64,000 bases of DNA from contig CM060731.1 of assembly GCA_030704615.1 (NCBI GenBank), positions 17,608,001-17,672,000 on the forward strand. Direction: 5' to 3'. Position numbers and translations under genes: made by a program. This document shows positions 26 through 27,499 of this stretch, piece by piece; the first letter of the stretch is position 1; every line of letters begins with the position of its first letter. This DNA comes from Takakia lepidozioides (Eukaryota; Plantae; Bryophyta). Under the pieces are notes generated by a model. That model was not told the DNA's origin. It saw only the letters and a list, made by a program, of their open reading frames with translations, and searched no databases.

Positions 26-511
26 TTATCTCTTGCAATTCGTCATCATCCAATGACGGAGTTGCACTGGCGGAGGAATCTCAGAAACATCCTCCGAGGA
101 CGAGTCTGAAAGAGTCACGAAGGTAGTGGATGTGCTCACCTCTTGTTTCACAGGAACTGTGCCCTTCTGTTGCACGACCGATGCTGCAGTGCCAGGGGTA
201 ACGACCGATCCTGCTGATTGTCTTCTCTCTTTTCCAAGGACACGGTATGTGCCTGGAAGGACTCTCCACTTCCTTCCACACTTGCCAACCAATGGTTTCT
301 CCAAGTGCCCAGAATCCAAATTCCCATCCTCGTCATACACCTCTTTTTGAACAAGGAGAGAACCCAACTCCAGCGGGAACACTGTAACCAGCTCATCCTC
401 ATGAACAACTGCAAACCCATCGTCGTCTGCAGTGGCAGTCAGTGGAAGAGTACCTGCATTGGAATGGAATCGAGCAAGTGTATCTCGCTCCCTCGACATG
501 TTTTCCCTCAC
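26..511 (-). CDS. Putative exon of an unknown gene, divergent from the ParB-MTase gene and probably TE cargo; may continue past the window start
   Basis: 161-codon ORF with protein-like composition (VVHEDELVTVFPLELGSLLVQKEVYDEDG; VKQE and acidic Ser-rich tail). No family recognised and exon boundaries are uncertain. Confidence 0.35.
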   Translation of the reverse strand: MRENMSRERDTLARFHSNAGTLPLTATADDDGFAVVHEDELVTVFPLELGSLLVQKEVYDEDGNLDSGHLEKPLVGKCGRKWRVLPGTYRVLGKERRQSAGSVVTPGTAASVVQQKGTVPVKQEVSTSTTFVTLSDSSSEDVSEIPPPVQLRHWMMTNCKR

Positions 512-1445
512 TGAACGAAAGTTGCGGAATCCTCGAACTGATAGCCCGCAATTACCGAAAGGGGAATTAAGACAAGCAAACCGAGGTCAACAAGGCTAGC
601 TCCAATCCAAAGGTTGCAGGTGATGCATGAAAGGATGTAGGGATGAGATGCACCTTCACTTCGGAAACAGCAACGCCAAGAGGCACTAACCAGAAAAACT
701 GTTTTCAAATACTACAAGAAGCCGTGCTGTTTATGGATGAAAACAAACACTGAAAACGACATGAAACCATCCATTATGAAAAGATGACAACAACCCTGGA
801 GAGCAGTAAACAGGAAGACCACAAATGTCATGAGGTTGTGCTGTGCCAGAAGAGCACAGCACAAACACTGACACTGCAGAAGATACCTCGCACGAATGCG
901 TGCCAGACATGGTCGTATCCGACAGAACCCTTTATGCCGAATGACCCCATGGCGACGGTAACGGTAAACTGCAAACCACAGGGTAGGCAGTACAACACAC
1001 GTGGATGCATATGTGAAGCATAACAATTATTGCGGATCTGCAAGAACTGCTCAAAAATGAACTAGCATTAGATTTCTACGGCACATCCGAATTTGAAAGA
1101 AAGCAAGAAGGCCGCGGTGTATTGGCAGGCGGCGCAGTACATCTGACATATATCGCTAGTGCATGCAACGGATGTACTTTTTTTCTTGCGCTTTATTGTT
1201 TGGATAATACGGAGACGACGGAATGGATGAATTCCGTTCGCACACAATAACAACACCCGCATCCAAATATGGTTGATAACGTCCAATTTTGATTTTGGTT
1301 ACATGCCATAGCAGCACTTGTTACAAACGTCAAACTGGAGAGCTCTAGAGGCATCGTGGGGAGCCCTTGTTTCCAGCGTAGGAGGAAGAGAAGGAAGTCA
1401 CTATACTTCACGAGCTCTAGAAACAGGAATAGAGCCAGAGATAGA

Positions 1446-4400
1446 ATGAGGATGGAAAGAGTGGACGAAGAGGAAAAGGAGATAGAAGAGGGAGTAGAGG
1501 AAAGTGTGGCGATGGAGGAGCAGGAATCAGCAGAAGAACAGCAGCCCGCCATAGTTCCAAGGACAGATGAAGAGGACACTGCATCTGAGGGAGAGACAGA
1601 CGAGATGGAAGAGGATGTTGAAGGTGGCCTCACGAGGAGTCTGCCTGCGGGAAGAGGAAGGGGGAGAGGCTCACGTACACGCTCGGCGCAGAGAGCAGCC
1701 CGAAGCGCAAAGGGTCCCCGACAATTGCGGAGTCTTCTAGAGCAGCCAAGAAAAAGGTGAAATTCTTAAGACCCACATTTCTGTTTCGTTGCTGATATGA
1801 ATATAGCCCACACAGGACATCTGCACCACGCTGAAAGCACCGCAAACTGGAAGCCCAAACAGTGTGCGACAACGCACACTGTTTGGGCCTACCAATTTGC
1901 TTGATTGTTCAGGTGCGAAACGCCCAAACTTGGGCACTACAGCAGGTTCAACACAACCCAAATTGCAACCTCAAACAGTGTGAGTTGAGCTAAACATTTC
2001 ACTGCTGTTTCCGTCTGGATATCGGTTTTCCAGGATATGTATGTCAGGACGACAGAACCCTTCAGTGGCAGCTCAAACAGTGTGCGTTGGCGCACACTGT
2101 TTGAGCTCTACATGTCACGGTTTTCTCCGTGTCGAATTCGCCCTTTAGGGCACGTTTCTGATGATGGAATAACCATTCAGTGGCAGCTCAAACAGTGTGC
2201 GTTGGCGCACACTGTTTGAGCTGAACATGTAAGTGTTTTTTCCGATTGAAATTCGGACTTCCAGGGCAGGTTTATGATGATGAAATAACCATTCAGTGGC
2301 AGCTCAAACAGTGTGCGTTGGCGCACACTGTTTGAGCTGAACATGTCACTGTTTTTTTGGTGTTAAAATTCGGCATTTAGGGCACGTTTCTGAGGATGAA
2401 ATAACCATTCAATGGCACCTCAAACAGTGTGCGTTGGCGCACACTGTTTGAGCTGTACATGTCACTGTTTTTTTGGTGTTAAATTAGGACTTCCAGGGCA
2501 GGTTTATGATGATGAAATAACCATTCAGTGGCAGCTCAAACAGTGTGCGTTGGCGCACACTGTTTGAGCTGAACATGTCACTGTTTTTTTGGTGTTGAAT
2601 TCAGACTTCCAGGGCAGGTTTATGATGATGAAATAACCATTCAGTGGCAGCTCAAACAGTGTGCGTTGGCGCACACTGTTTGAGCTGTACATGTCACTGT
2701 TTTTTTGGTGTTAAATTTGGACTTCCAGGGCAGGTTTATGATGATGAAATAACCATTCAGTGGCAGCTCAAACAGTGTGCGTTGGCGCACACTGTTTGAG
2801 CTGTACATGTCACTGTTTTTTTGGTGTTAAATTGGGACTTCCAGGGCAGGTTTATGATGATGAAATAACCATTCAGTGGCAGCTCAAACAGTGTGCGTTG
2901 GCGCACACTGTTTGAGCTGTACATGTCACTGTTTTTTTGGTGTTAAATTCGGACTTCCAGGGCAGGTTTATGATGATGAAATAACCATTCAGTGGCAGCT
3001 CATACAGTGTGCGTTGGCGCACACTGTGTGAGCTGTACATGTCACTGTTTTTTTGGTGTTAAATTCGGACTTCCAGGGCAGGTTTATGATGATGAAATAA
3101 CCATTCAGTGGCAGCTCAAACAGTGTGCGTTGGCGCACACTATCTGAGCTGTACATGTCACTGTTTTTTTGGTGTTAAATTCGGACTTCCAGGGCAGGTT
3201 TATGATGATGAAATAACCATTCAGTGGCAGCTCAAACAGTGTACGTTGGCGCACATTGTTTGAGCTCTACATTTAAGTGTTTTTCCGGTTTAAATTCGGC
3301 ATTTAGGGCACGTTTCTGAGGATGAAATATCTTGGAGTTTACAATGAACACTTACCTGGCACAAGTAGATGTTCAATGATCATTTACATGTCAAGTGAAA
3401 CAGTGTGCGTCAACGCACACTGTTTGAGCCCACTTTTACATTGTCTTTTTCTGTGGAATTCGGCAACATAGGACATGTCTGTGAGGGTCAATGTACACTT
3501 ACCTGGCAGCTTAAAATAGTGTGCATCAACGCACACTCTTTGAGCCCACTTTTTCATGCCTCAGCCGTCGTTTCATGCCTCTCTAATATCAAGTTGAATG
3601 AACAACCCTGCAGGAGAAGATGCAAAGTGTGGCAGATGAGGTCCCTTCGGGTCAGGAGAAGGAGATAATTGTTGATGTGGACGATGAGTTCTATGAAAGC
3701 AAAGCCGCTGAGATGCTGGGGGGTCAGAAGGTAAACTCTCAGCTTGTGGTGCAAAGTATGCTTGCCCCGGGTGGGAGGTTGAAGATTCCCCTGTGTAGGT
3801 TGGTTTCCATGTCCGTCGTTCGTACACCCCTCGTCAAGGACATTCTCAAGCTGGAGCCGAGTTTGTGCATGGGTATTTGGATGGATCCGCAGTCTTTTAC
3901 GTTTCTACTAGGGATTCCAAAGGTAATGAGCTCCTCATGGATCAGTCAATCGTGGACTCCTGGGACCCCATTTGGAGACAGCTGAACGAATCCTTCGAAC
4001 TTCTTCTCTCCAGGAAACCTTCCACCCAGGCATTCTCGGCAAAGATGTTTCACGTTTGGGATGGGAACCACCGCTTGCTTGCATGGATGGCTGTCATTGG
4101 GAGGCTGCACTCACAGGAGGAAGAGTGGCATTACTCTGTTCGATCGATGGTGCTGGATTGTGACGGGAACATGATGGGTCTTCTGACGGCAATGAATGAT
4201 GTGAACAGGTTGGTTTCTCATTCTACATGTTCCACTTGTGGTTCCGTTCTTCTTTGATTGAAGACCTTGAATTTCATTCTGACTTGCAGATATCATTCTG
4301 CAGAGGAACGGAGACATCGCATGTCAAAACGAGTTTGGTTCACACACTGTATAGATACAAAGGATAGGGCAGATGCCCTTGACCAACTTCAAGACCATCC

Positions 4401-7400
4401 TTTCAGCGGAGATGTACAAGAAGTGCGAAAGCTCCAAGACATCGGAAACGTGGTACTCGTTGACCCGTGAGGCTTTCATGGAGTACATGTACACGGTGAG
4501 ATACATCTTCCTTCATCTGGTCTTCCATATTCCACATGTTTGTTTCTGTTTGTTTCCCTTGACCTTGTGCTGATGCAACTCTCTTGCATTCCCTTGCAGC
4601 AAGACATTGCAGATGCAGGGGAGCGTGGCAAACTGGAATACTACAGCTCTACCCCTGAGGAGAGAAGGACAGCAAAGGGGGTTGAGAGTCGCATCCAGAA
4701 AGAGATGACCGCTACAAGAAGGACTATAATGAGTGCTTTCGTGAAGCAGTTGAGAATTGCCGACCCATCATTCGGACCGCAGTTTCTCCTGGAGATAAAA
4801 AACCATTATAACAAGCCAGGCAAGCCAGAAATGGCCCAGGAGAAGTTGCACAGGTTGTCTACCGCCGTTGTGTCTCCAGAACAAAAGGTGAAGTGGCTGC
4901 AGATATGGAACTCCGATCCCACAGTTAGGGATACCCACATGTTCCCAAGGCCGGAGAAAGAGAAGAAGACCCAGCGTGTCATTCCTGTCAGTGACAATGT
5001 GCTGGACACCTGGCTTCACAAGGCCACTTACTGGAGCCAGGTGTGATGTCCTTCCCTGTGTCACTGTCTTTTCTCTTTTCCTGTCCTTATCTTTCTATTG
5101 CCTCTTACATTCGCTGTGATTGCTTTTGGGTTCATTCTTGCATTTGTATTGTTTTGCAGTTGGAAGAAAGGGCCAGATCGGTTCTGCATACTCAGCTGGC
5201 TGACTATGGCATCAGTATGATAGCACCGAAGGTGTCCTTCGAAGCATACATGAGGAAATGGAGAGCCACAGTGTGGCACTCTTGTTTCTTTAGAGAGTTC
5301 AGCAAGGAGGGTGGCATCAGTCGAACAAATGAGCTGGACCAGCAAGAAAAAGGAGAGGAAGCCTGGAAACGATGCCTTTACAGGTGCACACTCTTGCACT
5401 ACTTATTTGTGCTGTGGTTGCAATGTGTTGTGTGGCATACTGTTGAAGGGGGTCTTCCTGGTGTGATGGAAAAGTTGCCACACAATATTTCCATTGTAAA
5501 ATGAGGCTGTCTCTGTTGCTGCATGGTACATAAAGTTTGTTCTCCTGGAAGAGAATTGCCTGGACAAACATCCGGATTTCGTGGACCTGTGGCTTGTCCC
5601 TGCTGGCAACCAGACCATGTTTACTACTGGGATCTTGCATGACTGGGGCCCAGACCATCTTTCTTCTTGTGGTTGGTATTTGGATTGCCCTCCTTCTGAG
5701 ACCCCAGCTCCAGAGGTGTCTTTGAGGAGAGAGAATGACCGTATTGCAGCCACTGCCGCAGCAGCAGACCTCAACATTCATGAACGTAATTTGAGGACTC
5801 TTGCAGAGAAGGAGCCTCCCGCTCAGGATACCCCAGGTAGAGGAAGAAAGGCAAAGGGAAAAGATGTTGCTGGTGTTGTTGGGAAGGGAAGGGGTAGAGG
5901 GAAGGTGGCACAAGGGCAGGGAAGTGTTGCAGATATTGGCCCTGTGGAGCATGTCCAGCAGACTCCACCGCATGGTAGGGGATCCGGGAGAAAAAACAAG
6001 GGGGTGGTTGATCCCAAGGACCCGTACCATGCAGTGGAACATCCCACGAGGGTCATTCGCCCAACCAGGTTGGAGATCGCCAACGTCGGGTTCCTTGCCA
6101 TGATGGAGTCGAAGAAATCTGATTACAAGGGCGAGCCATCACCAGTGTGGGACAGATTGTGCAGTTCCTCAGCACGGTGCGTGTTCTCTTTGGGTTCTGT
6201 GGCTTCTGTTGTTTTTGTCTGCTGTGGGCATGGATCGTTTCTAAACTTGTGAGAATTCCATTGTATTTTTGTTTGCAGGCTAAAATGACCAAATCCTGGG
6301 TGAACGGGAAGGAGAAGCCATATGCAGCCGAACTCATCATCTTGGACATCCCTGATGGGTTGGCAGTCCCGGATATCCCTCCATCGGGTGCTTGTCCGGG
6401 TTGGAATGCTTTTGATGAGCGCTATTGGCGGTGGGTTTTCTCCTTTTGCAACTTCTTCCTGTCCGATGCTGGTGTTTTGGTGCTCATCCAGTCCATCGAC
6501 GGTCGGTGTCGCCGTGCACTTTCCAGCTATTTGAAAGCCTCGGGCATGAGAGTCGTGAAGACATAGAATTGTGTGAACAGCATGTACCTTACGAAGGGGG
6601 ATCGTCCGGGAGAGATGGTGAGTTTGCCTTCTTCTTCCTCTTCTTGGTTGTTCTCGGATGGGGTTGTATAGGTCGCTTGAACTCATATGTAGGGGCCCGA
6701 TTTTTTTTTGCTTCTTAGTTCCTTGTGGATGTCATGTTCGCAGACTCGTCTATTTGAAGCTGTTTGTCTCGTCCGGGTGCATCCACAAACGACTCCGGCC
6801 GACATTACCGAGTTTGCCATCACTCATGGGGCCAAGTTCATAGATGACAGGATAGATCCCCCCACGGATGACATGCATCACAACTACGTCGACAGCAACG
6901 TGTGCTTGCGAAGGGGGAATGGGGTTCCTTGGAGAGGGGCGAGGGAGAGGAGCCCGGCTTTCATTCAAACGATTGTGGAGTGCTGCACCTACACAGACGC
7001 CAGAGTTCTGGATTTGTCGATGGGCACAAGTTCGTCTCTTCAACATTCACATTTCATGAGGTTTGATTGAGCTTGCACTTTCAGCACTTCCCACCGTTCC
7101 AAATGTGTCTTCAATGTCTTCTTCATTCATTCTATTCCACTGCAGGTGCTTCTTACCACGCTTGCAAGGCCAGTGCGCGACATCTCTTTGGGATTGAAGG
7201 GGATGCTGAGATTTACAAGAACCTCCTGATGGGTTTGGGTGGACACACTTCTCAAGTCCTTCCGAAGCCCCGTCCCGTTGATACTAATACAGATGAGACT
7301 TCTGACAAGGAGCTGGACTCCGGCTTTGCCTGTGAGTAAGTTCAACCTTTGCATGCTTGCATTGTTGTTTCAATATCGAGAATCGCTGTTCTTGAGGCAA

Positions 7401-7723
7401 AGTGCACATAGGAGACATCCTCTTTGTTGGACTTGTGCATTGCATCATTGTGTTAAAAATGGGGTTTTGTGGACATGTGCAGGAGTCCGCGTGCTTCCAC
7501 TTGCCCTCCAGGGCTATCACACCTATTTGGACTTGTTTGCAGTCCTCCTCGGTCTTGCGTGCTACCTGTCTATGCGGAGGCACTCGCAGCAAGCATGTCC
7601 GTTCATGGGACTCCGAGTCCACCTTACGACGGCCTTCGTAGAACACGTGGTGTTGGGGCCAGAATCTTTGTAGATGACATAGCACAGGAGGTGGACACTG
7701 ATTGTGATGACTGCGACACTTGA
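1446..7723 (+). pseudogene. Multi-exon gene encoding a ParB/Srx-like domain fused to a beta-class amino (N4C/N6A) DNA methyltransferase-like domain; disrupted in this copy
   Basis: Hand-spliced exons with GT/AG ends: 1446-1756, 3614-4208, 4304-4495, 4600-5040, 5160-6176, 6279-6617, 6744-7029, 7146-7335, 7483-7723 (~1200 codons after repair). ParB-like: IPLCRLVSMSVVR..LE(A)EFVHGY..FHVWDGNHRLLAW (DGNHR at 4060-4074)..AMNDVNR. MTase-like: ELIILDIPDG (motif IV-like, DIPDG at 6345-6359), LSDAGVLVL, RERSPAFIQTIVECCTYTDARVLDLSMGT-SASYHACKASARHLFGIEGD (motif X/I/II-like). Frame breaks at ~1751 (inferred), ~3857, ~4353, ~5499 and ~6148; in-frame TAG at 6564-6566. Confidence 0.75.
1853..3547. repeat. 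Tandem array (116-bp period) of a 40-bp palindrome CAGCTCAAACAGTGTGCG-TTGG-CGCACACTGTTTGAGCTG
   Basis: Core copies (GCTCAAACAG position) at 2071, 2186, 2302, 2418, 2534, 2650, 2766, 2882, 2998, 3114 and 3230. Degenerate copies at 1853, 1969, ~3397 and ~3509. The consensus has an 18-bp perfect stem and 4-nt loop, and the inter-palindrome segments are nearly identical. Confidence 0.97.
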
Positions 7724-8085
7724 TATGAAGTTTTCTTTTGGTTTAATTCTGGGCCAAATTTGAAATGGGATGGTTGTGTGTCCTTGTTGTCCTGTTTGCA
7801 ATGTGTGCGTGGAATTCACATTCATGGTTACAAACTATTGTTGGAGATGGGGGTTGCATGGACTGCCTGGATTGTTCCTTCAATCTATTTGGTGTTTTGT
7901 GGACCTCACAGACTTAAGTACATTGCGAAAACAAACAAACCACTTTGGTTCGTGTAGAGCATCCTCGCATCATTTGCTAGTTGGTCCCCAAACTATTCCT
8001 GCTAGAAGAATGGTTGGTGGATCCATCACGGTGAAGTCCACCTCATCAAAAACTGTTCAGGCATTCTCAATTCTACCCAAATCAA

Positions 8086-8237
8086 CCCGCGGAAATAGGT
8101 GACACCACTCGGAAAATAGGTGACATCCGCGGAAATAGGCATTGTTTGCATGCTGACGTGGCGTGAGCCTGTACTGGGCTCACGCTTTCCTGGGCTCACA
8201 GGCTCACGCCTCCAGGCTCACGGAATAGCACCCCCCC
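8086..8237. mobile_element. Unclassified TE terminus-like segment abutting the truncated transposase
   Basis: Short internal repeats (GGAAATAGG-like x3, GGCTCAC x4) ending in GGAATAGCACCCCCCC. Shares TGACGTGGCGTGAGCC with the insert at ~31787-31925. Confidence 0.45.
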
Positions 8238-10330
8238 TATTCGACCTACCTTACTGGAAGGTAAACATTCGGCTTTCAAGATCAACATGCATTTGCCTGT
8301 CATTCAAGCCCTGGTCCTTTACTGATAATTTGATCTCTTCAGGAACTGCCGCATTTGTCTAATGGTTGTACAGGTTTTGCATCTATGTGTAGGATCTCCT
8401 CATTCAACACACACTGGACCCTATGCATTGCGAGAAAAACCTCTGTGAAAACATAGTGAAGACTATCCTTGGAGAAAAAGACACTTTGAAATCTAGGAGG
8501 GATTTGGAAGGAGATGGGATCCGGCAGGACTTGTGGGTGCGACCCCATGGAAGCAGAGCAAATACGGTGTTAATGCCACCAGCCCCTTACATCTTGAGTG
8601 CAGAGGAGCATAAATTATTTTTGAAGACTCTGTCATCGTTGAAGGTGCCCACCGGGTATGCATCTGCATACAAAAAACACGTGGAGGATGGAAAGTTGAC
8701 GTATTTGAAGAGTCATGATTATCACACACTAATGCAACAAATCCTTCCATTGTGTCTACCTGGTTTGATGGAACCTGGTCCACGACGTGCCATAATGCGA
8801 GTGTCAAGAGTTTTCAGGAAATTGCAAGGTTGTAGATCCTGCAGATATGCACTCTCTACGTGAAGAGGTTGTCATCACGTTGTGTCTCCTAGAAAAAGAG
8901 TTTCCACCTCGTTCTTTGATGTCATGACTCACCTGCTGGTACACTTGGTTGATGAGTTGGCTATCTGTGGACCTGTAAACACGAGGTGGATGTATCTGGT
9001 GGAGAGGGCAATGAAATACCTCAAGGGATGTGTTCGTAATAAGGCAAAACCTGAAGGCTCCATGGCAGAAGGGTATGTGTTGGATGAGGCACTAGGGTTT
9101 TGTACCGAGTACATGGCAGATTTCCCCGCAACCAGGAGGCAAATTTGGGATGCCGATGAGGACGAGGGAGTGGAGGGAGTGGCTGGGGAGGTCCTCGAAG
9201 GCGCTGGCAGAACTCGCAAATTGGATGTGGATTTGCGCAGTCTAATTCACGATTATGTCATTAACAACCACACGAGCATAGCTCCTTGGATTGAGTGAGT
9301 ACTGTTCCTTAGCACTTTCTAGCAAGTTTGCATGTGTGTGAATTTCATTTCATGGTGGACGGTGACAGTTCATTTACCAAATTTGTGCTCTCGATTGCAG
9401 AAACTATGAAAAAGCCCAAGCAGATGTGGAATCAGGTCGGTCTGCTTTTTGGGGAGAGATACTTGGCAACGTGGAGCCTGGTCACAACGTTGAGAACACA
9501 GAATATCCTGCGCATTTGCAATTACTGCCTCCTTTTCAATCTTGGTTGGCTCAGGCTGTAGAAGATGATGTGGCTGCAGGAATGAGGGATGATGAGGTGC
9601 TCTTGGAGGAAGTGATTGATCTGTCAAGACCCCCGTCTGTGAATGCAGTGTCATTCAAGGGACTGAGTGCGTATGGGAACCACTACAGGGCCAGCACAGT
9701 CCGATCTAACCAGTTGGTCACATATGACAGTGGGGTGAGCTCTATGTTTGAACATGAGGACTGTCAAGTGCGCTATGTGGGCATTGTGAAGGAAATATTA
9801 CAAGTGGAGTATGACAAAACTAAAGTTGTCATCTTCATTTGTGGGTGGGTTTGTGCAAAAACTGTGGGGATGAATGCCTCCATGAAGAAGGATGAGTTTG
9901 GGTTTACCCTGGTTAATTTCAAACACATGTTACTAGCTAATGATCAACCCTGCTTGTTTCCATCACAAGCTGAACAGGTTTTTTTTTCAGATTGTGTGCA
10001 AGAAAAAGGATGGAAGGTTGTGTTGGAGAAGAATCCATGATCGCTGAGAGTGGTGCATGATGTGTCAACTTCACTATCGGACAATACAGATAGCAGTGGC
10101 ATGTCAGCTCCCATTCGGCTCATTGATGATGTTCGAATTGGTGGACAACCATGTACTCGCCCTGTCCTTGCAGTAGAGGTCACTGAAAAAGCCATGGAAG
10201 CTCTGTTCAAGACCCCCATTGGGAATACAAAGGTGCCTGCACAAGAAAATGATGAAGCAAACTGTGAGGAACATTCAACTTCAAGCAGTGAGGATGAAGA
10301 CAATCTACCTTATATAGACTTGCAGTTAGT
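8237..10330 (+). pseudogene. CACTA/EnSpm TnpD-type transposase, 5'-truncated (DUF4218- and DUF4216-like regions present, Transposase_21 core missing)
   Basis: Exons 8237-8260, 8393-9294, 9401-~10330. Motifs LFDLPYWK/DLLIQHTLDPMHCEKNLCE, LKSHDYHTLMQQILP, LEKEFPP(S)FFDVMTHLLVHL..GPV..RWMY..ER..LKGCVRNKAKPEGSMAEGY, YVGIVKEI..KDEFGFTLVN..PSQAEQVFF. Frameshifts at ~8825 and ~8909; TGA at 10038-10040. The 3' end is approximate. Confidence 0.92.
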
Positions 10331-11853
10331 TGGCGCCCTTGACGGTTGTGGTCTCCAAGCTCTCTCAGCTTTGCTTCATAGATGTTTCTTTGCATGCAAG
10401 TGAATCCATATGTGAAGGTAAGTCCCTGTTGGCATAAGCTCATGTTTGTTTGTCGTCTTGGTATTTGGAGCCGCCAATTCGATTGGGGATATTTTACCTT
10501 CTGGCAGATAGTGGCCTGTCATACTAGGGGGAAAACTGAGCAGCAACTGCTGGACTGTACAGCACTTGAAACTGTACTTTTGACTCGGACCTATCTAGTT
10601 GGCCATTTAGTGACTTGCAGATATTATCCTTCTGTGCAATCTCGATTCCCCATTTGCTATTGCTCTGTGGTTTTGCGATTAAAAATTCAATTAGGAGAAT
10701 GGTTGCCAATTATTCCTCACACATGGTTATTCTCAGTGTTCAATGCTCCGTGATCTGGTCGGACTACTGATAATCATATTCGATCAGCAGTGTTTGTGCC
10801 ATCTATATTTCGAGTTCATTTATTTTGTTCAATATACATGTACACAGTCCTGATACACTAGCAACAATAGAATTTGTTTTTCCTCCTCGACTTGGAGTGG
10901 CGTAGCTTGCTACACTCCCCCTTTTCAGCGTTTTGAGCGTGCGTAGAGAATGAATACATATGTAATGGAATTCAACCGACATTAATTAATACCATGTGAG
11001 AGAAATCAGAATGAAGATGGCAGACTTGCACTATGCTTGAATCGAGGGGAAAAACTCCACCAAGGAGAAAAATAAAGACTCTGGACTATGCGTCGAGTGA
11101 CTGGCCAGCCGAAAAAGCCTTACCATGAGACTCAGATCGAAGAAGCAAAGTGGTTAGCCTCCCTCTATAAGTGGCATTTCCTCAGTAGCATAGGCTCTGA
11201 CGATTGGGCTTCTCAATAGGACAGGCGACATCAAACAACGATAAATAGACGAGCTCTGCTGAGCCGTGAAATTTCCGCGATTGATCTAACGACTCATAGT
11301 GCAGATCAATTGGGGGCAGTCGATGACATTGATCATCAACGGCTTAAAAAACCATTGTAATCTGATTATGTAAGCTAACGTTCTGTGGTATGCGTACAGG
11401 AATATTCTTCCGCCTGCTCTAAATTCCACATTCCCTGGCAGCAGATTATGCCACGTGACGGACATCGCTTCAATCATCCAATGTGTTTTTGTTTTTCCGC
11501 ATTTATACTAAATAATATCTATCATTAATTGGGACACCAAATAAGAGTCATGCAGACGACTACACCGCGACATTATCCATAGTCAACAACGTTTGACCAC
11601 ACTCCAAAATCTCTAGAGTCAGCTTCGTTACCCTTTAAAGGCATACGTGTGACTTATGATCACTACTCTTCTTTGGTCAAACCACTTTGACCTGAATTCC
11701 AAACTTTACGGAGTCGTTTAGTCACATACCCGACCTTTTTAAGGCATATCCATGACTTCTTCGTGCCTGTCCCACTTTGAGTCATGGTTTGAGTCATGAA
11801 AACCATGACTATCCAAAAAAAAAGAGTAAAAAAAACCATGATTTGGCGTAGTG

Positions 11854-13147
11854 GTTACACGGAGTCCATGGATTATGGGGTGGGTGCAATGGAGAAGAAG
11901 GTGTGACCATGTGTCTATTTGGGATGGTTGGACGTGGCATAGCGTACAATGTTTGTTATGGTATAATAAACGCCAGAATATGTTTCATCTTTGGTTACTC
12001 ATGTATTGGCCATATCGAAATCATAGTGTCTATCTAATTTGGGCATTGAAAACTATAAAGGATGTCCAAAAGTGGTTGGACATGTTGTGTAGTAGATGTG
12101 GGGAGGAGACCCACTTAGATATGTAGGAATTTGTGTAGGTGCGAGATGCCTGTATTAGTTCTTTGGTTTCTCCTCCAATGTACATATTTAGGTCCCGTAT
12201 GGGTGCTATGTCCGAGAATCTCGCCTTGGTGCAGACGTTCAGACCAGCCAGAATGGATATGTGTGTGCCAAGTGAATAGGCCGGTCATAGATGGGTTGGC
12301 AGGAGGTTGAATAGATCCAAGTTGAGCCATTTGGTCCATTATTTCATTGCCCACTGTGTGTATATGGGAACGAACTTTGTGTATGGGGATTTGTAGCGGC
12401 AAAGAGGAAACAATATCAACAATTGCTTTGATAAGACTAAGGTATGGTGGATGGGATTTGCGTGGAGGGTAAATTAAGGTTTTGGTTGGTGAAGCTATCC
12501 GTAGATAGGTAGTAGGTTCTTAGAGGTTGGCGCACTCAAACCAATGAGGTCATATTCATGACTCAAATACCTTTCACATTTCAAATTCATACCATACATT
12601 ATGCGCCACGTAGCCATTCAATGAGACTTGAGTCAGATACACGACCACCTAAAGTTATAAAATGGTCATTCTCATGACCAAGATGGTCATGCTTATGACC
12701 AGGATAATTTCCCACTCCTACTTGATACCATACAAAGAGCGTCACGTGTCCAGGCACGAACACATCCACAGTTAGATTTATGACTCTCTAAAAGTTGCTA
12801 GATTTCAACACGTGGTATCGCTCAACGTGAACACGTGGCCCGTTGTGGCATGCGTGCGAGATAACGTCGTCCCTACACCTGTCATCATCTGAAATTGACA
12901 CGTCGCAATCCGGGGAGAGCCGCGTGTTGCTAGAAAACAGTCACGGACGTGACGAAATCCAGGGTCATGTATCTTGCTCACAAGGGGATATCACCCATAG
13001 TCATATTTACGACGCGGATATTAGAGTCATCGTAACGACACGGTCTGCATGATTCTTTGCAAAAGAGTAAAAAATGAGTCAAAATGACCAAAAGAGTCAT
13101 GAAAATAGTAAAAAAAAGTGTCATGAAACCCGTTTTTTGTACTAGTG
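11854..13147 (+). mobile_element. Right-hand part of a second (outer) CACTA element
   Basis: Ends GTCATGAAACCCGTTTTTTGTACTAGTG at 13147 (reverse complement CACTAGTACAAAAAACGGG), with many ATGAC/GTCAT subterminal motifs at 12550-13130. Confidence 0.75.
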
Positions 13148-14268
13148 AACCCGACATAATCAAAGAGTCAAACATTTCATAAAAGTTCTACGGGCACATC
13201 CTAAGTCCAGATGATTCAACCTCATCAATGCGGGAACGTTCCAAGGAAGGTGACCAGATCGCACTATACCCTCGTGGCTCCTACCATGCACATGTCTTCT
13301 CCACCCTTCTTGCTCCCTATTACGACTCTGTCATGATATCTTACTTATCGGCGACCCCATATCAAGTCGACCTTACCAATAGGGCCACTCCCATCCCTCA
13401 GTACCGTTTATATTATAGAATTCACATTCTGTCATGATATATACCCAGACCAATCTATTACATATAAATGTGACAAATACGAAGGTCCCTCATAACGGCC
13501 CTTCGTCAGCATGGATGGAACGTGGCCCCCTTGACTATTATCACCGCAGGGGGGGGGGGGTTGCACATGATAGCCATAAATGTCCACATCCTAAAAGAAA
13601 ACCTCAAGCTACAAGTTTAAACACACCACCTCTTTTCTACGCACCATACATTTTACAACTATCACATCACTCACTGCTCTAATCTTGAACAAACGCAAGA
13701 TTGAAAGTCGCCAGCTGACCACTGTGTGATTGGTCCCGTTGCTGATAGAGCCCACTCCTGAAATTAAGGGGGCAGTACCCACAAGGGAAGAGGCTCTTAT
13801 TTATGCTAGCTCCGGCTAGCATATATATATGTATATATACACATCGCAATGTTTAAGGGGATAGCATGTTTTCATTTCACTATGGATCTTTTTGGAATTT
13901 TCATGGAATTTTGTGAAATGTTCGTTTGTGATTATGTGAGACTGCTTGGAGTGATGTAAGTAATCATGCGCTACCCGCTACTCAACCTCAGTAGAAGGAC
14001 ACATACAATTAAAAAAAACCCTCACATGGACATAAAAATAAAGTGGGCATGGGATCGGGTTGTAGCTTAAAGTTAGTTCTATAGCACTTAAGGAGTGGAT
14101 TATGTATAGGGGAATGCGTGAGTGGAGGGCGTTCCTGGATTTGAGGGCCTCAATCCAGGCGGCAGCCCCAGGCTAAGGGCTAGAAAATCCAGGAAGCCCC
14201 GACAAGAGGGGCCTTCCCCCTACATAAAGAAACTCAATTTTTTTGCTATATACCTTATGTCACTTTAA

Positions 14269-14790
14269 CCCCTAAACGACCACGCAATTCTCAGTGTAGT
14301 CAAACTTTGATCTCTAGCTCTTGAATTTGAGAATTTTTTTTAAGAAATATTTTTCATAGATGAACCTATATGTTTACTATAAATCTTGAATTTTCAGAAT
14401 CGTCTCATTAAAAGTGAAATATTATGATTTTCTTAAGCTTAATGTCTTCAAAAACTCATATCAATTACAATAAGTATCCATAATTTATGAAATTTTACCT
14501 CGGGTGTAAATCACAATGGAAAACACTTTAGTATATTTTATAAAAAAAAATTTCTTAAGTTGAAAAATTCGATAGAAAAACTATGCTGAAGAACAAATTG
14601 GCTCTTGACCCATTGAATTGGTAATTGTTATAAAAGACTCAATAATTGGAATTTTTGATGACTCGTAAAGTGGAATAGAGACTAGACATTATCTTTACTT
14701 CGTTATTTCAACTCAAATGCAAAAAATATTGTTTTCAAACTAAGTTTGACCAGAAAGAAGCCACTATAGGGCCTCTTCGGCGTTTAGGGG
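14269..14790. mobile_element. AT-rich non-autonomous TIR element (MITE-like)
   Basis: Left end TTAA|CCCCTAAACGAC and right end GGCGTTTAGGGG|TATG are inverted repeats around an AT-rich non-coding interior. Confidence 0.55.
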
Positions 14791-15922
14791 TATGCAGGTT
14801 GTAAAGCTAAAGAAAAAAACCACAGTGCATTCCATGGCGCGTAATGCACCATGGACTGCCCTGGTTGTCATAGCCGTGCTATTCTGCCTAATAATTGCCA
14901 TCAAAATACACTATGCAAATTTATTAGACTTGTAAAAGAAGCTACTTGTGCGGAGTATCATCTTGTAGATAGCATCCAAGAGGAGGGCACATATATCACT
15001 ATATCGGATGCATCACAGCTGAGCCGTTGGGTGGGTGGGGTACTTACATCCCTAGGAAGCTACATCCAACATTCCTCTTCCTCATGGACAAGAACATACT
15101 TTACAACCAGATTTGTCTACTTCACATCCACATGAAGAAAACCATCCCACAGCCAATGGAAACACGCCACGTCACCCAAAGAGCCTCTCATACCGACTAT
15201 GATTGACCTCTGGACGTTGACTGTGGCTGACTGAATCGTCTAAGTTACTGGACTCCAAGGACTGTTGCCCTGCTCTTGCCGCCCCCCTCCAGTATATCCC
15301 AGTGTGGTCTCCATGGAAGATGGTTGTGATTCATCCAAGGGCCTCCAAGGTGGAATGTGACGCCTGGCTTGTAGGCCTGCCCCCACTAAAGTTAGTGCGT
15401 GTAACTCGTGTGATGTGCACGTCTGTGGAGTGTGGAGGAAGGGACCAGTGTGGCGCAAGTGGGAACTGACAAACAGTTGAGGTTGAATGTCGAATTTAAG
15501 CTGGACCCAACTTAGGCCTTCTGATGGCAATATTGACAAGGGCATGATCCGAGACATACTTTAGCACAGATTACGTACACTTCGCGGTGACCGCAATGGG
15601 GCCGCACCGGTCGCCTAACACACGTGTGTCGTCAGAGAAGAATAAGACATAACGTCTCTGACATCACATGTATCGTCCTCGTCTCTGTCTGCCACCTTGC
15701 AGGCGCTGCGGGCAATACCGTTTGCAAGTCTGCCGGCGGCAGATTGAGAACTGGGTGTCTCTCCTTCCCAATCTATTCAAATGCAGGCTTGCCTCTCAGT
15801 ATATAATGTGCTATCCGGGTGTTTGTCCTGCAGCTAATCTACATTGTCGTCTGCAAGTTTGCATCCTAGTGGGATTTCATAGGATGCAAACTATCTTCGT
15901 TTCATGAGCTTCAGACGCCAAA

Positions 15923-18900
15923 ATGATGGCGCAATGGCTGGGAGTAAGAGTCGTGTTAGTGGCGGCGATAGTATCGGCCTTGTGTTTGTGGAGAGGGGAT
16001 GCCAGTCCTGTGCTACTACAAGTCAATACCACTGCTTCTATTGCCACCACCGATGAAGTGTTTCTGTGTGCCACTATGGATTGGTGGCCTATTGATAAGT
16101 GTGACTATGGCACATGTAGCTGGGATAACGCCTCAATGCTCAATCTGGTAACTAGGACTGGTAACTGGGTTCTCACACAAACTCAACGTCACATATAGAT
16201 GACAGCGAAAACATTTAGCTGCAGTGTACATTGCTTTGGTAAAATCTATGTGGTAACGAGAGGTACAATGTAGTAATGTGTGGTTCATGGAACATCCTTG
16301 GAGCCCAATTGAAGCATTGGTTTGTGGCCAGAAGAAGTGTAACCTCAAGCACTTTGGCGATGTGAGTCTGATAAGAACGAAATGCTTGTGTGCGCAGGAT
16401 CTTTCGAATCAGTTACTTGAAAAAGCTCTCTTAGGTTGGTTGGGCTCTCTCTTCCGCCTTGGTTTGGTTCCTGTGATTCTCGGTTGTTCTATTTGGCCCT
16501 TCAGGCCTGCTGCTGACGTACCAAATATGTCTTCACTCTCTGACTGTGCTCGTATGCTGGAATCTCATCTGTCGGAGTATCTTTGTGGAATAGTTAGACA
16601 CTTTTGTGGCTTGTCTTGCTCATCCTGTTTGAATGAGTTAGCTTCAACCCCCTTCCTTAGCTGGTCAGCTATCTTGCACCTCAATCTCCATCTTAATTTG
16701 TTGGCAAGAATGTGATACCCCCAACAACAAAGATGGCAGGTCCTCGGCAACCTGTGACTCAGATAATCATAAAACTTCATGCTATACTATATGGTTCGGT
16801 ACACACTTTCCTAGGAGTGACTAGGGTGTTGTCTGTATACAATGTTACTACAAAGTATCACTCAAGGGCCCATATGCCTATAGTTTGTAGGTGCCATGAA
16901 AGCTTTTCCCAGTGAGTGCATACACTGTCCGCAAAGTAGAGTGGTTTCCATATCACTCCCTTTCTTTATTTGCTGGATCAATTCACCAACTGGGTGTTGA
17001 GGACCTTGCTCCATAATCAAATCTGTCAACATCCAAATCATTGACTCATAACAAGGGTTGGATTACTGTTAGCTACCCTTGGCCTGAGCTGACAGTACTG
17101 TAAATAGGAAAATCAAAATTAGAACTCCCACAACAAGGATGGCTTAAATGTGAAGCTAGGACATCATACATAGCTTCTTCTTGTAGTCCTCCAAAGTGTA
17201 TGGATTGACTGTAGGCTTAAGAGCTATGTCACCTCCCAGATTTTTTGGTGATATGTAACATCTTTGCCAATGCTGCACCATTCAGTGATGAAAATCTGGC
17301 TTTGTGCCCACCTCCACACTCCCACCCCATTCTCTCTGCTACCTGGCCTTGTTCCATCCAAACTGGGCATGGGATCTATTGCCACAAGGCTATGCAAACG
17401 TCGTCTAATGAGTATATTCTACTACCTGGCCCCCCTCCCTTCAAACAGTAATTTTTTGTCATCAACTGTCGTTCTATTTATTTCACTGCTTCCTCTTAAG
17501 AGGCTGAACCATTGTTTGTGACAGGTTTGTCTCCATTCAGAATCCGCCTCGGAGGATCACTGCAGGACGAAGTGGTTTATGAAGTGGGAAATCCTCAGCA
17601 GCCCTGTGTTCCCTTTGTGAAGAATGGATCCCATATATTTGGGTTTCAAGGAGGGTGCCTCAGTATGGGGCGATGGAGTGATCTCAACAATCTCTTCAAC
17701 CGAACAGGGTATGTATCGAATACTACTATACTACTGCTGCTTTGCATGCCTTGAGGGCTTAAGTCACATAGGCCAGCAGTTAGGACATCACCAGGTCACA
17801 TTTCTTTTACCGAAAGTGCTTTGCGACGCTGTCAAATCTTCAAAGCCTTCTATTTGGGGTACTTTGCTGCACCAAGCCCCCACAAAGGACCAAAGCTTTG
17901 GAGAAGACTTTGTCATTCATGCAGAATCTGGCGGTATTGTGAAGGAGTTAAATAGGTCAATAGAGGTTTTGCACACAGTTTACTCTAACCTATAATCTAC
18001 TGTGCTGTATAAGGCATGAGAGTGGCAGCAAGCACTATCTAGAACAGTTCACCAGACAAGTTCTAAACCACTAGGCAGGCCTGATTTCCTTGTTTACCAG
18101 TTGACTCCTTACCAAGAATGGGAAACAGAGACCTTGTAAAATAATCTGAACTTACCTGCAGCTTATTTCTAGATTCAAGCAACTTAAAGTGAATGATGCA
18201 AGTTATACAAAAGTAAAGGATTTAGGTTGGGAGAGAAACTGAGAGGACGAGAAAATGAATGAAAGAAATCTCTTAACATCCATGGGGAACCATGAGGAAG
18301 AATCAACACGTGAAAAGACAGGAAGAATATGTGATTGTTTTTCAAAGAGGAAGAAGCTGAAATGGTATGTTGTGAGGGACTGTGCAGAACTCAGATTGCA
18401 TTTGGACTGAATGCTTTGTATAACCGCCAGCGAGTAGCTCCGAATATCTGGGGTCCTTGGGATTCTGCAAATGCACATGACTTCATTAAGTTTACTGTTG
18501 ACCAGGGATACCAAGTGCAGGCCTGGGAACTGGGTGAGCAGGGGTCCCTTTCACCACTGTTCCTGGGCTTTTTCTGGATTCTCAGTGGGTTTCATCCATA
18601 ACACTTTGTTTGCCATAGCCTTGTGGCCATAGACCCCCCACCCAGTTTGGACGGAAACAAGGAATAGTACTACCTTTGTGAGGGGGTCACTCCAGTAGTG
18701 TGACCTACCTTGGTATAAACAATTAGTTCAGGCTTTCCAATGTGCTCTAGAAAGCCCTCCACACAAGCATCCATCTGCTGTCTGTGAGCAGCCCAAAAGT
18801 TAGACCCCAACAGGGCCAGGGCTGTAGGCTCAGCCTCGAGATTTTGGAAGTTGGTAAACAGAGGTGCAGTAACCATGTTCTTGATGTTCCTAAAGACAGA

Positions 18901-21900
18901 CACTCTCTGGTGAGAATACCCCCACAGGTGTGAAGTGAAAAATAGGTTTCACATAGCTTGTTTCAAATACTCTGTAAGGTGTTTCTCACATTGCTGATAG
19001 GTGGTGTGGTACACAAAGATGCCAAGGCGTTCAGGTAATCTCATGAGCTACTTGTGTGTTCCTCTCCTCTCCCTTCGACTCTGTTTTGCAGACAGGGATC
19101 AGAAGGGGTTACTGGGTTTGCACCTAGTACCATCCCTCCAAAATAAAATCTCATCAGCCTACTGAAAGTCTACCAGGTATATGGGCCTATGAATCAACTA
19201 CATGCTGAATTATTGAGGGTACAAGTCAGATAGGACAATTGTATTTGATAGCTATCCTGGCCATGCAGTCACTCACCTTACCTGTGCATGAGAGAACAGA
19301 AATAGACACGTGGCATGTAACTTATGACCTGTCTTCTTCATGGACACAGGCAAGCATGCTATGTTCATTGTAGCTGCTATAGACCAGGGGGTTTGTCTCA
19401 GAAGGTATTTGTCCAGCTGGAGGTAGTGTGTTGATGAGTTTACAAATCATTTGTGCAGGGAATGAGCTCAGTGGGTCCGGTGTCGGAACCAGCATTACAG
19501 CCAAGCAGTACGCTGCGGATGTAAAAGAGCTTCGCAGATTGATTGACACCCTCTATTTAGGAGCCAATCAAAAGCCCCTTCTAGTTTCCCCTGATGGGTT
19601 TTTCACTGTCCAGTGGTACAAAGATTTCCTCAATGCCGTGGGACCCGGTGTTGTTGATGTCATTACACGCCATATCTACAATCTTGGACCAGGTTTGAAA
19701 AGCCCTGCTGTCTTTTTACTTCATGAAATGGTTTTGTCAAGTTTTTGGCTGTTGGCATATTCCGTAGGTTGTGTAGAGCTTTATCATTTTTGGGTGTGGC
19801 TGGCTTTTAGGGCAATAAAAAAGTGACCCCTTTGACCCCTTTGTCAACTATGAAGAGAAGGTTTGTCCGTCTAGTGGGCACTCAGATATACCAGAAGTAT
19901 TGGATGATAATCACCCTGGTGACCATTTCGACGTCTAGCAAGGCCCTGAGATGGTTTTTCAAAGCACAGCCAGGCAGCTGCCTAACTACTCTACCAGGGA
20001 CAGTGAATGTCTCTCCTGCAGTGTCGGAACCTTTCTAGTGAGCTGTTGTCTGTGGGCATGATCTCAGCTCTCAATTTCGGCATCCTTGTTGGCGGGACAA
20101 TGTTTCGAGCATGCCAATTTGTGATGAGGCACCTCAAACTTTGTGATTTTCCTTTCTGTACCTCATGTATACAACTTCATTAAAAATTCCGGATGTCCAT
20201 ATGGCAATGATATGTACTGTTGCAATTTTTTGAGACAGGGGTCAGCACTGACCTGGTGGAGAAAATACTCAATCCAACAGACTTGAACAACGAAGTAAAA
20301 AACTTTCAAGCAGTTCGGAGCATGCTGCAAAAGTATGGCCCGGGGCCAGTAGCTTGGATTGGTGAAGCGGGTGGAGCTTATAACAGTGGCCATCACCTTG
20401 TAACAGATGCATTTGTCTTCAGTTTTTGGTACGGATGCTCACTTCCCTTGTCCAATAGCTCTTTCTCTGCATCTTTCTCCACCATGTTCTTGTAGGCCTA
20501 ATTGCCACCTCTAGTCAAGAGCATTTTCTGTGACACAACGCAGGGGACATCACACTGCTATCTTCACAGAAAGAACAACTATGGTCTTGTAGTCAATTTG
20601 AGTGGTTACCGCTTCAAATGTCTACGTACCTTCCGTAGCTTTACTTGTTTTCGATGGTAATGTTGTTGTATTCAGGTCTGTGGCCTATCGCATGTCAACA
20701 GATAACAGCAAAGTAAACAGTGGAAAACACTCTCTCAAAACTATTGTGTTGTGTGCCGAAGATCATGTCAAACACTAATAACACAACCTTTATGAGCAGG
20801 CTGGTTATAGAGTTCACCGGGCCTTTGTGATCTTGTCAGTCTTAGCTTCTCCAAAAATTGTCTATAGAATATCTTGTAAGGAGAGTACAAGGATAGCCTC
20901 ACTATGTCTGTTGGGTCTGATCCACAATGATGTGAGGACAGAAATTCTGCTCCTAACTATCTTTGAGGCTTGAAATGCATGTCAATGAGGCTTGAAAGTA
21001 TTGTGTCTGGAATCACACAACAGATTTATGGACATTTGGGGCAAATGAGCCTAGAAATTGTGTCAATAAAGCCAAATTGAAGGCACATCTTCATCCGCTG
21101 GGATACTAGCTATGCAGGCTCAGACTTCAGCTTTAAAGTTCCCTACTGCTGTGTGGTTTCTCAGTGCTTTGCTTTTGTAGCTGAAGACGATGTGCATTCC
21201 TCACTCACACTTTAAAGTCACTCAAAGCAAGGAGCTCAAATTGGTCACTCTCTCTCTCTGTGTTAACGTTCGAATAGTTTCTTTCTTTTTTCCCTTGAAG
21301 GAGGCAATCCTCCTTTTGGCCACATTTGAAAAGTTTTGTGTTCGGTAAGGTCCCAGTTTCTTTCTTGTATTCTGCTTTCTTTCGTCCCGTAATTTCTTTG
21401 AGCTTGAGTGAAAATTTCAAGATGTATGCAGGTACCTTGATCAACTTGGGCAGGCTGCATCCTTCAACACTAAGGCTTACTGTCGTCAAAGTTTTATTGG
21501 TGGAAACTATGGTCTCCTCAACACGACCACTTACGAACCAAACCCAGATTATTACAGGTCAGTTGACTGTCTGGCTTTGCACCTTCCCTCCACACTTCGC
21601 TAGGAAATCATTCTCATGTAAATCATTTTGCTCAAAAAATTCACTGTCTGCTGTTGCAAATTGAACAGTGTGTGGGAAGGTTAGACACCTCCAAGCTTCT
21701 AATGCATGTCTAGAGGCATTACTGACCACCTCCCACCAGCATTTCTACAATCTACTTTGCCCAGTGTTACTCAGGTCAACCAGCATTTCTAGAATAAGTA
21801 AACCTGCTAACTAGGATTTATTGGACCTCATTGGGTTTTTCTTTGTGGAGATTTTCAAATGTAGGGGATTTAGGGGTTTGGTCAGTCACATGCCTGAACC

Positions 21901-25961: not shown

Positions 25962-27499
<1,538 letters not shown>

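Follow-up and report, generated by a model that had tools for sequence, protein, structure and literature searches.

We analysed a 64,000-bp stretch of the genome of the bryophyte Takakia lepidozioides (GenBank assembly GCA_030704615.1, contig CM060731.1, positions 17,608,001–17,672,000, forward strand; hereafter the window), positions 26–8236 of which are most probably the right-hand two thirds of a decayed Mutator-like element (MULE) with two divergent genes, the rightward one being a ParB/methyltransferase-like cargo gene that has its own array of palindromes. The leftward gene would encode a highly diverged DDE transposase and has only its first exon (26–511) in the window. The rightward gene (1446–7723, + strand) would once have encoded a protein of approximately 1,150–1,250 amino acids (aa), comprising a low-complexity N-terminus, a ParB/Srx fold, a long helical region, a basic linker, a beta-class methyltransferase fold, and an acidic tail. 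The window copy itself is a non-functional pseudogene, so its own biological weight is small.

The first coding exon of the leftward gene (26–511, − strand), which encodes the N-terminus of a Mutator-like transposase, is transcribed divergently from the cargo gene, with the remainder of the leftward gene situated upstream of the window. The open reading frame (ORF) at 26–511 matched the N-terminus of a transposase-like ORF on the environmental contig L005 (BLASTP, 2e-8) and fitted the N-terminal consensus of 38 homologues (VP..FP...DG, W.L..G.YRV.G, and LSDS.D). A divergent gene upstream on the opposite strand was common to the window, three Riccia loci (L001, L008, and L009), the Adiantum locus L003, and L005. 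The transposase-like protein had more than 324 homologues, and its alignments, read by eye, contained conserved D...D...E positions together with C-x-x-H and SWIM-like C-x-C...C-x-H motifs. Protein-language-model features (Atlas) placed the transposase with MULE/SWIM families (0.92 and 0.89), and all family-bearing matches (10/10) agreed. A profile built from the 38 transposase homologues gave no significant match among PDB sequences.

The ends of the Riccia elements were found by aligning paralogous Riccia loci. All four bounded insertions had a perfect 9-bp target-site duplication (TSD) on both sides: L002 at 6577–16251 (9,675 bp; TSD GAAGAAATG), L008 at 1102–16028 (14,927 bp; TSD CCTTGATCC), L009 at ~1081–17075 (TSD CATGCAACA), and L001 at ~2362–15850 (TSD GTGAAATTT). 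Duplications of 9 bp are a hallmark of Mutator elements; CACTA elements produce 3-bp duplications and have CACTA/TAGTG ends. Complete Riccia elements carrying the gene measured 9.7–16 kb. Their terminal inverted repeats (TIRs) were short and imperfect (GGGGG(T/C).AGTAA(C/T)ATATCAGC..), with the units ending GGGGG../..TCTC, and subterminal CTGATATCAG palindromes were also present. The L008 element was 5 kb longer than its 93%-identical relative in L002.

The probable right end of the Mutator-like element in the window lies at 8080–8236 and consists of short direct and inverted repeats ending ..GGAATAGCACCCCCCC. The reverse complement of this end starts GGGGGGGTGC, resembling the Riccia left ends GGGGG(T/C).., and the repeats just before 8238 end ..CACCCCCCC. 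No second copy of the putative right-end motif was found elsewhere in the window, and a TIR search of window positions 1–26000 returned intron palindromes only. The adjoining sequence (8238–10400, + strand) is a 5′-truncated fragment of a CACTA TnpD-type transposase (DUF4218, 4.8e-29; DUF4216, 1.3e-12). Its similarity starts abruptly at 8238, and no transposase-like sequence was detected upstream of that position. From the sequence we infer an end of the Mutator-like element near 8236 and a position inside or next to a CACTA transposase gene. The abrupt start of TnpD after the element end suggests a nested insertion, and the probable insertion of the element into the CACTA transposase gene explains the CACTA neighbour.

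The cargo gene is visible on the + strand as a series of ORF fragments. Its pieces were collinear with the intact Riccia sorocarpa proteins P0170, P0177, and P0178 (1,191–1,244 aa), and they also aligned in order with Adiantum nelumboides P0050 and P0091 (partial gene models) and with the plant-like environmental contigs L004–L007. Window exons were searched singly, and full-length analyses were performed on the intact natural homologues. Splice sites were predicted from GT-AG borders, phase fit, and exon ends common to homologues. A preliminary description of this DNA had proposed nine GT-AG exons splicing into ~1200 codons; the multi-exon gene at 1446–7723 stands, with ten exons counted and the copy recognised as a pseudogene. 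All junctions of the ten-exon model except that between exons 5 and 6 had GT-AG borders and compatible phases. All the motifs quoted in that description (KIPLCRL, VWDGNHRLLAW, AMNDVNR, ELIILDIPDG, VLDLSMGT, and LFGIEGD) are present.

Exon 1 (1446–1756) is an ORF whose product is an acidic and then basic N-terminus; one base is deleted after 1651. If that base is restored, the reading frame continues without a stop as far as the donor AAG|GTGAAA at 1756|1757. This donor is in phase 0 and matches the phase-0 acceptor at 3613|3614, a fit that supports exon 1 as real. The predicted intron 1 (1757–3613) has GT at 1757 and AG at 3612–3613. Exon 2 (3614–4209; one-base deletion after 3855) encodes the ParB/Srx-like domain (KIPLCRL ... 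VWDGNHRLLAW ... AMNDVNR) and is followed by exon 3 (4291–4495; one-base deletion after 4353). The helical middle region is encoded by exon 4 (4600–5040), which was delimited by tblastn to L004–L007 and P0178 and has phase-0 GT-AG boundaries, and by exon 5 (5160–5383), delimited by ORF and alignment. Exon 6 (~5540–6176, the start being approximate; one-base deletion after 6154) encodes a conserved W-rich block and then the basic G/R/K linker, and was placed by alignment to Riccia and L004/L006; a phase-compatible exon 5/6 junction was looked for in the sequence and not found. The methyltransferase-like fold begins with exon 7 (6279–6617; placed by alignment), which supplies its first half, including the motif IV-like ILDIPDG as well as WNAF, and contains an in-frame TAG at 6564–6566. 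Exon 8 (6744–7029; alignment, and tblastn to L006) encodes the PWRGARERSPAFIQTIVE helix and strand beta-1 (VLDLSMGT). Exon 9 (7146–7331) encodes the rest of motif I and motif II (ASYHACKASARHLFGIEGD); its phase-1 junction with exon 8 gives ..MGT-S-ASYH.., and the family profile matched DpnA/CcrM/RsrI in this region. Exon 10 (7512–7723; stop codon at 7721–7723) encodes the C-terminal tail (LPVYAE ... FVDDIAQE ... acidic end) and matches the tails of Riccia P0177, P0178, P0202, and P0203 and of L004. The exon 10 acceptor CCTCCAG|GG at 7511|7512 is the sole one fitting the phase-1 donor at 7331|7332. Splice joints were sought in the contigs of two putative RNA runs and none was found; these contigs gave only short fragments, 90–95% alike and loose-ended on both sides, and no RNA run of the organism contained the locus.

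A phmmer search with the ParB-like exon against 1.84 billion representative sequences yielded 348 homologues at E ≤ 1e-3, the best being 1e-26 at 46% identity. Many of these matches stop exactly at the exon end, so that this end is common to homologues. The taxonomic range given here derives from this search and from cluster names; homologue searches with Riccia queries gave Riccia only.

Decay of the window copy was established by comparison with contigs from two small same-species DNA runs (X1 and X2), in which many copies 90–99% alike are present. Four one-base deletions (after 1651, 3855, 4353, and 6154) and the in-frame TAG interrupt the window gene. An extra A follows 1651 in all X1/X2 contigs, and an extra G follows 3855 in other same-species copies; correspondingly, the two halves of the ParB-like exon share one frame in L004–L007 and are shifted in the window. 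An extra G follows 4353 in one X1 contig, and the homologue P0007 reads SHVKSNLVHTLHRMQTVGKLPLGEF in one frame across the exon 3 stretch for which the window needs two. An extra G after 6154 in an X1 contig brings the donor G|GTGCGT at 6176|6177 into phase. At 6564–6566 the window reads KT*NC and homologues read KDWWG or KEWMG, with W or M at the stop position. The GRGRGRG stretch reported earlier for the N-terminus was probably not part of the original protein, because its reading frame arises from the deletion after 1651. In run X2, window positions 1350–1549 (the exon 1 start and 100 bp upstream) had a summed contig depth of 385, compared with less than 90 over the rest of the gene. The genome therefore contains this segment in far higher abundance than the gene body, and the segment may be shared with non-autonomous derivatives.

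No significant sequence-profile match to the ParB/Srx superfamily was obtained. Pfam searches detected no family on single window exons at E ≤ 1 and none on ten long homologues at E ≤ 0.01, and ParBc (PF02195) did not match P0170 at E ≤ 1. A profile of 51 ParB-region sequences found no ParB among PDB sequences; its match to eL24 was rejected as spurious. As no exon had a Pfam match, parts of Riccia P0170 were modelled with family alignments. The AF2 model of residues 165–420 had a predicted local distance difference test (pLDDT) value of 78, and in Foldseek the top ~40 rows were all ParB, Noc, KorB, Srx, SbnI, or serine kinase, led by 7BNR (Myxococcus ParB), with a best E value of only 2.6e-3. 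The DGNHR-type phosphate-binding motif reads VWDGNHRL at ~4059–4082 in the window; G108 and N109 were invariant and H110 was conserved in at least 90% of the 51 sequences. Model residues 160–256 were helical and matched unrelated helical proteins only, and no helix-turn-helix was recognised after the ParB-like domain in the Riccia model. Together, these observations make a moderate but coherent case for a ParB/Srx fold in the family.

The predicted structure of the C-terminal domain (Riccia P0170 residues 930–1207; pLDDT 71) retrieved CcrM in Foldseek (6.5e-10), followed by M.BceJIV, M1.HpyAVI, M.MboIIA, the rotifer N4CMT, M.RsrI, and type III Mod subunits, and the family profile matched DpnA, CcrM, N4CMT, and RsrI among PDB sequences. 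PF01555 scored 23.7 bits on P0170 against a cut-off of 26.7 and covered the motif I end only; a precomputed PF01555 match was present in five Riccia paralogues. In the window the motif IV-like segment precedes motif I, which is the beta-class (permuted) order, read directly and in agreement with the preliminary description. In the predicted model a strand ends in the D of DLPTG and is followed by a loop, as expected for motif IV. Model and profile matches thus support a beta-class amino-methyltransferase fold of prokaryotic type. The fusion of a ParB/Srx domain with such a methyltransferase, claimed earlier from the sequence, is borne out by Foldseek of the Riccia models. The UniRef name “Trimethylguanosine synthase”, attached to Riccia P0170, P0177, P0197–P0199, and others, was rejected as misleading, since by fold and by motif order these proteins belong with the beta-class DNA amino-methyltransferases.

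The domain keeps its fold, the aspartate and proline of motif IV, and the glutamate of motif II. Motif IV reads DLPSG, DMPTG, DLPTG, or DMPSG in 24 Riccia sequences, with three further D-x-S-S-x variants, DFPIG and DVPFG in Adiantum, and DIPDG (window), DLPDG (L004), and DVPDG (L006) in the window clade. The (D/N/S)PP(Y/F/W) form was found in none of the 32 family sequences. Riccia motif I is DFAGGWGAT in 12/28 sequences, with near variants in the rest, and the glycine-rich motif I is kept in the Riccia clade only; the motif II glutamate (GIE/AET) is kept in both the Riccia and the window clade. Judging from these motifs, binding of S-adenosylmethionine (SAM) is plausible. Methyl transfer is doubtful because motif IV lacks the PP-aromatic signature, and canonical N6-adenine/N4-cytosine transfer appears the less likely option. 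ELIILDIPDG, described earlier as motif IV-like, occupies the right position, but it has the D-x-P-x-G form, and its reading as motif IV of an active N6A/N4C enzyme is not supported.

In Riccia, the gene evolves under purifying selection. The ratio of nonsynonymous to synonymous substitution rates (dN/dS) for the P0177 locus compared with the P0178 locus was 0.33 over 1,205 codons (p 6e-10), with a value of 0.30 for the C-terminal block (p 0.006); in the young pair L001/L009 it was 0.81, near neutral. Purifying selection implies that the C-terminal domain does something that is selected for.

Intron 1 of the window gene contains a palindrome array (1856–3542) with ~14 copies of a 40-bp palindrome, composed of 18-nt arms and a 4-nt centre (CAGCTCAAACAGTGTGCG TTGG CGCACACTGTTTGAGCTG). 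Its core consists of 11 tandem 116-bp units at 2056–3329 (TRF score 2126, 93% matches). The half-site had 28 matches, compared with 1.4 expected, all within 1856–3542, and no further match was found elsewhere in the 64 kb at 0–1 mismatch; the 40-bp palindrome is confined to this intron. Each relative has its own, different palindrome array beside or inside the gene, located at 9096–9372 and 14652–15166 in L001, at 9025–9355 in L002, at 10418–10873 in L003, and at 8198–8809 and 4188–4863 in L004. The L004 array at 8198–8809 (85 bp × 7.2, TGGTCGGGTCCGACCA) lies between two gene exons and not upstream of the gene, which indicates that arrays can occupy different introns in different lineages.

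It is mainly this lineage-specific pairing of gene and array that leads us to think that the protein recognises its own element. By analogy with the recognition of parS by ParB, the protein would recognise the palindrome array of the element that encodes it. At the array it would act as an accessory factor, which may modify or shield the DNA or chromatin of the element, or may assemble the ends and the array for transposition. A more specific version, which we offer as speculation with a low probability, is that a CTP-dependent ParB-like clamp loads at the private array and brings there a diverged, SAM-dependent domain whose new active site is D-x-P-x-G. This domain would place on the element an unconventional mark (N6-methyladenine [6mA], N4-methylcytosine [4mC], or another) or block silencing by 5-methylcytosine (5mC) and histone H3 lysine 9 methylation (H3K9), and palindrome and protein would co-evolve in each lineage.

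Several points weigh against a Mutator-like element with a ParB/methyltransferase-like cargo. Pfam gave no significant match on the 38 transposase homologues, the best being Transposase_mut at 0.034 (1/38) and the ZSWIM1-3 RNaseH-like family at 0.18; because of this, the Mutator assignment rests on the language-model features and the 9-bp TSDs of Riccia. The element's left end falls beyond the window, so the TIRs and TSDs described here are those of the Riccia relatives. Structures were predicted for a Riccia homologue that is ~35% identical in the ParB exon to the broken copy in the window. Motif IV is D-[LIMVF]-P-x-G in 29/32 family sequences and D-x-S-S-[GR] in 3/32, and motif I is degenerate in the window clade (DLSMGT-S, DVAASTG, and DYNASTG).

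The preliminary description had proposed another carrier. In that reading, a CACTA (En/Spm) element captured a ParB-methyltransferase of prokaryotic origin, which travels with TnpD and possibly writes 4mC/6mA on its own DNA or counters 5mC silencing. On the same strand, DUF4218/DUF4216 TnpD sequence does lie 0.5 kb downstream, the solved structures nearest in fold are bacterial, and related accessory genes of red algae do occur in CACTA-superfamily Plavaka elements. The TnpD piece, however, is 5′-truncated with an abrupt start, and no TnpD-like sequence was found in L001–L007 or in the 10 kb around the gene copies of Riccia, Adiantum, and the environmental contigs. No CACTA...TAGTG inverted pair brackets the gene in the window; the Riccia insertions have 9-bp TSDs and GGGGG.. 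ends, and the conserved neighbour is the MULE-like transposase, the first exon of which is present in the window too. The non-canonical catalytic motif also argues against the proposed marking. A CACTA carrier is thus largely refuted, and the combined proposal appears improbable. Still less probable is a domesticated host gene or gene family merely near transposons, with the palindromes as ordinary satellite DNA. NCBI annotates ~50 Riccia gene models as ordinary hypothetical proteins, and a host EST1 gene is located 5 kb away in L001, but the Riccia copies are dispersed, number dozens, and share 45–97% identity, many copies occur in the Takakia genome, and copies decay by frameshifts. The gene also lies inside TSD-flanked units together with the transposase, and the palindrome is limited to its first intron. 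Its earlier reading as an intron-containing, multi-copy transposon gene holds.

A further possibility retains the Mutator carrier and regards the C-terminal domain as a fully active N6-adenine/N4-cytosine methyltransferase that works through the D-x-P-x-G loop and marks its own palindromes or the body of the element. Conservation extends to the motif IV aspartate and one proline, to a canonical-looking motif I in Riccia (DFAGGWGAT), and to the motif II glutamate; purifying selection acts on the domain; one fern copy (DVPFG) has an aromatic residue at the fourth position; and the same role was proposed in the algal papers. On the other hand, in the liverwort copies and the window clade T, S, or D stands where an aromatic residue would stack on the flipped base, no copy retains the first proline, and motif I is degenerate in the window clade. 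In METTL14 and in the DIRS1 methyltransferase domain, the PP-aromatic signature was lost together with activity. For DIRS1, loss of the signature with loss of activity is also documented in the literature (PMC4738411). We therefore consider full activity possible but doubtful, and prefer a Mutator-borne cargo protein with a diverged methyltransferase-like domain.

Downstream of the element, an apparently intact actin gene with two long exons (26129–27326, + strand; Pfam Actin, 2e-51 and 2e-72) is located 18 kb away, and its presence indicates that the region is not pure repeat. Glycosyl hydrolase family 79 is represented by an ORF at 19428–19826 (+ strand) that is similar to its N-terminal domain (2.7e-31), probably a single exon belonging to a host gene. 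Separated by 1 kb, two paralogous ORFs (47377–47859 and 48368–48775, + strand) have a C-x-x-C...H-C block of cysteines and histidines in common; they have no Pfam match and resemble the tail portion of a repeated element.

Proteins that recognise and act on the DNA of the transposon that carries them are known from very few eukaryotic elements, and a ParB-plus-methyltransferase cargo had previously been noted only briefly, in algae. The present analysis adds that the gene occurs in Mutator-like elements of bryophytes and a fern, that it is under purifying selection, that a lineage-specific array is always alongside, and that the catalytic loop is consistently non-canonical. It also corrects two likely annotation errors, namely the elements as CACTA and the gene as an active N6A/N4C methylase or “trimethylguanosine synthase”. 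As intact Riccia copies exist, the hypothesis is concrete and experimentally tractable.

The closest published system by description is that of the brown alga Ectocarpus, in which the Sola1 element Sola1-1_Ec32 encodes a 1,104-aa ParB-like plus N4C/N6A methyltransferase protein opposite the transposase, and this protein was proposed to bind and modify its own element (PMC12477816). Both there and in the window family, a ParB-like domain and a methyltransferase are combined in one protein of ~1,100 aa, encoded opposite the transposase in a large DNA transposon; the carrier is Sola1 in the brown alga, whereas here it is Mutator-like with 9-bp TSDs and the host is a land plant. In Bostrychia moritziana, the Plavaka genes PAG2 and PAG3 encode methylase+SET and ParB+2-oxoglutarate (2OG) oxygenase as separate proteins, the ParB-like domain has 7BNR as its best HHpred match, and tandem inverted-repeat arrays lie beside the ParB gene; homologues of these accessory genes also occur in Mutator elements of Chondrus (10.1101/2025.02.11.637652). 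The window family shares with PAG2/PAG3 a methylase-like domain of the PF01555 type, the ParB-like domain, the inverted-repeat arrays, and the 7BNR match. It differs in that the domains are fused rather than separate, the carrier is Mutator-like rather than a CACTA-superfamily Plavaka, and no SET or oxygenase was seen in the window.

ParB-methyltransferase fusions of bacteria and phages, and enzymes of the beta class (CcrM, M.MboIIA, M1.HpyAVI, M.RsrI, and PvuII, together with the rotifer N4CMT) have the same permuted fold, W(D/N)xF, and a helix before motif I. Unlike these, the window family has D-x-P-x-G in place of DPPY/SPPY, an 800-aa N-terminal extension, introns, and a transposon location, with Pfam scores below or near the gathering threshold. 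En/Spm TnpA is a transposon accessory protein that recognises short repeated motifs in its own element. VANC of the Mutator-family VANDAL elements of Arabidopsis is an accessory protein with an anti-silencing role and recognises short repeats in its own element (10.1101/2025.02.11.637652). TnpA and VANC, which alter the epigenetic state or the transposition competence of the element encoding them, offer a functional analogy only, with no sequence or fold relation to the window family, and VANC has neither a ParB nor a methyltransferase fold. Our literature searches returned no report of a transposon ParB-methyltransferase gene in land plants. The fresh prokaryotic capture into this plant that had been suggested is not supported, as equivalent genes are published for brown, red, and green algal transposons (PMC12477816; 10.1101/2025.02.11.637652). 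The window gene is a land-plant member of this cargo kind recently published for algae, and not a CACTA-borne novelty.

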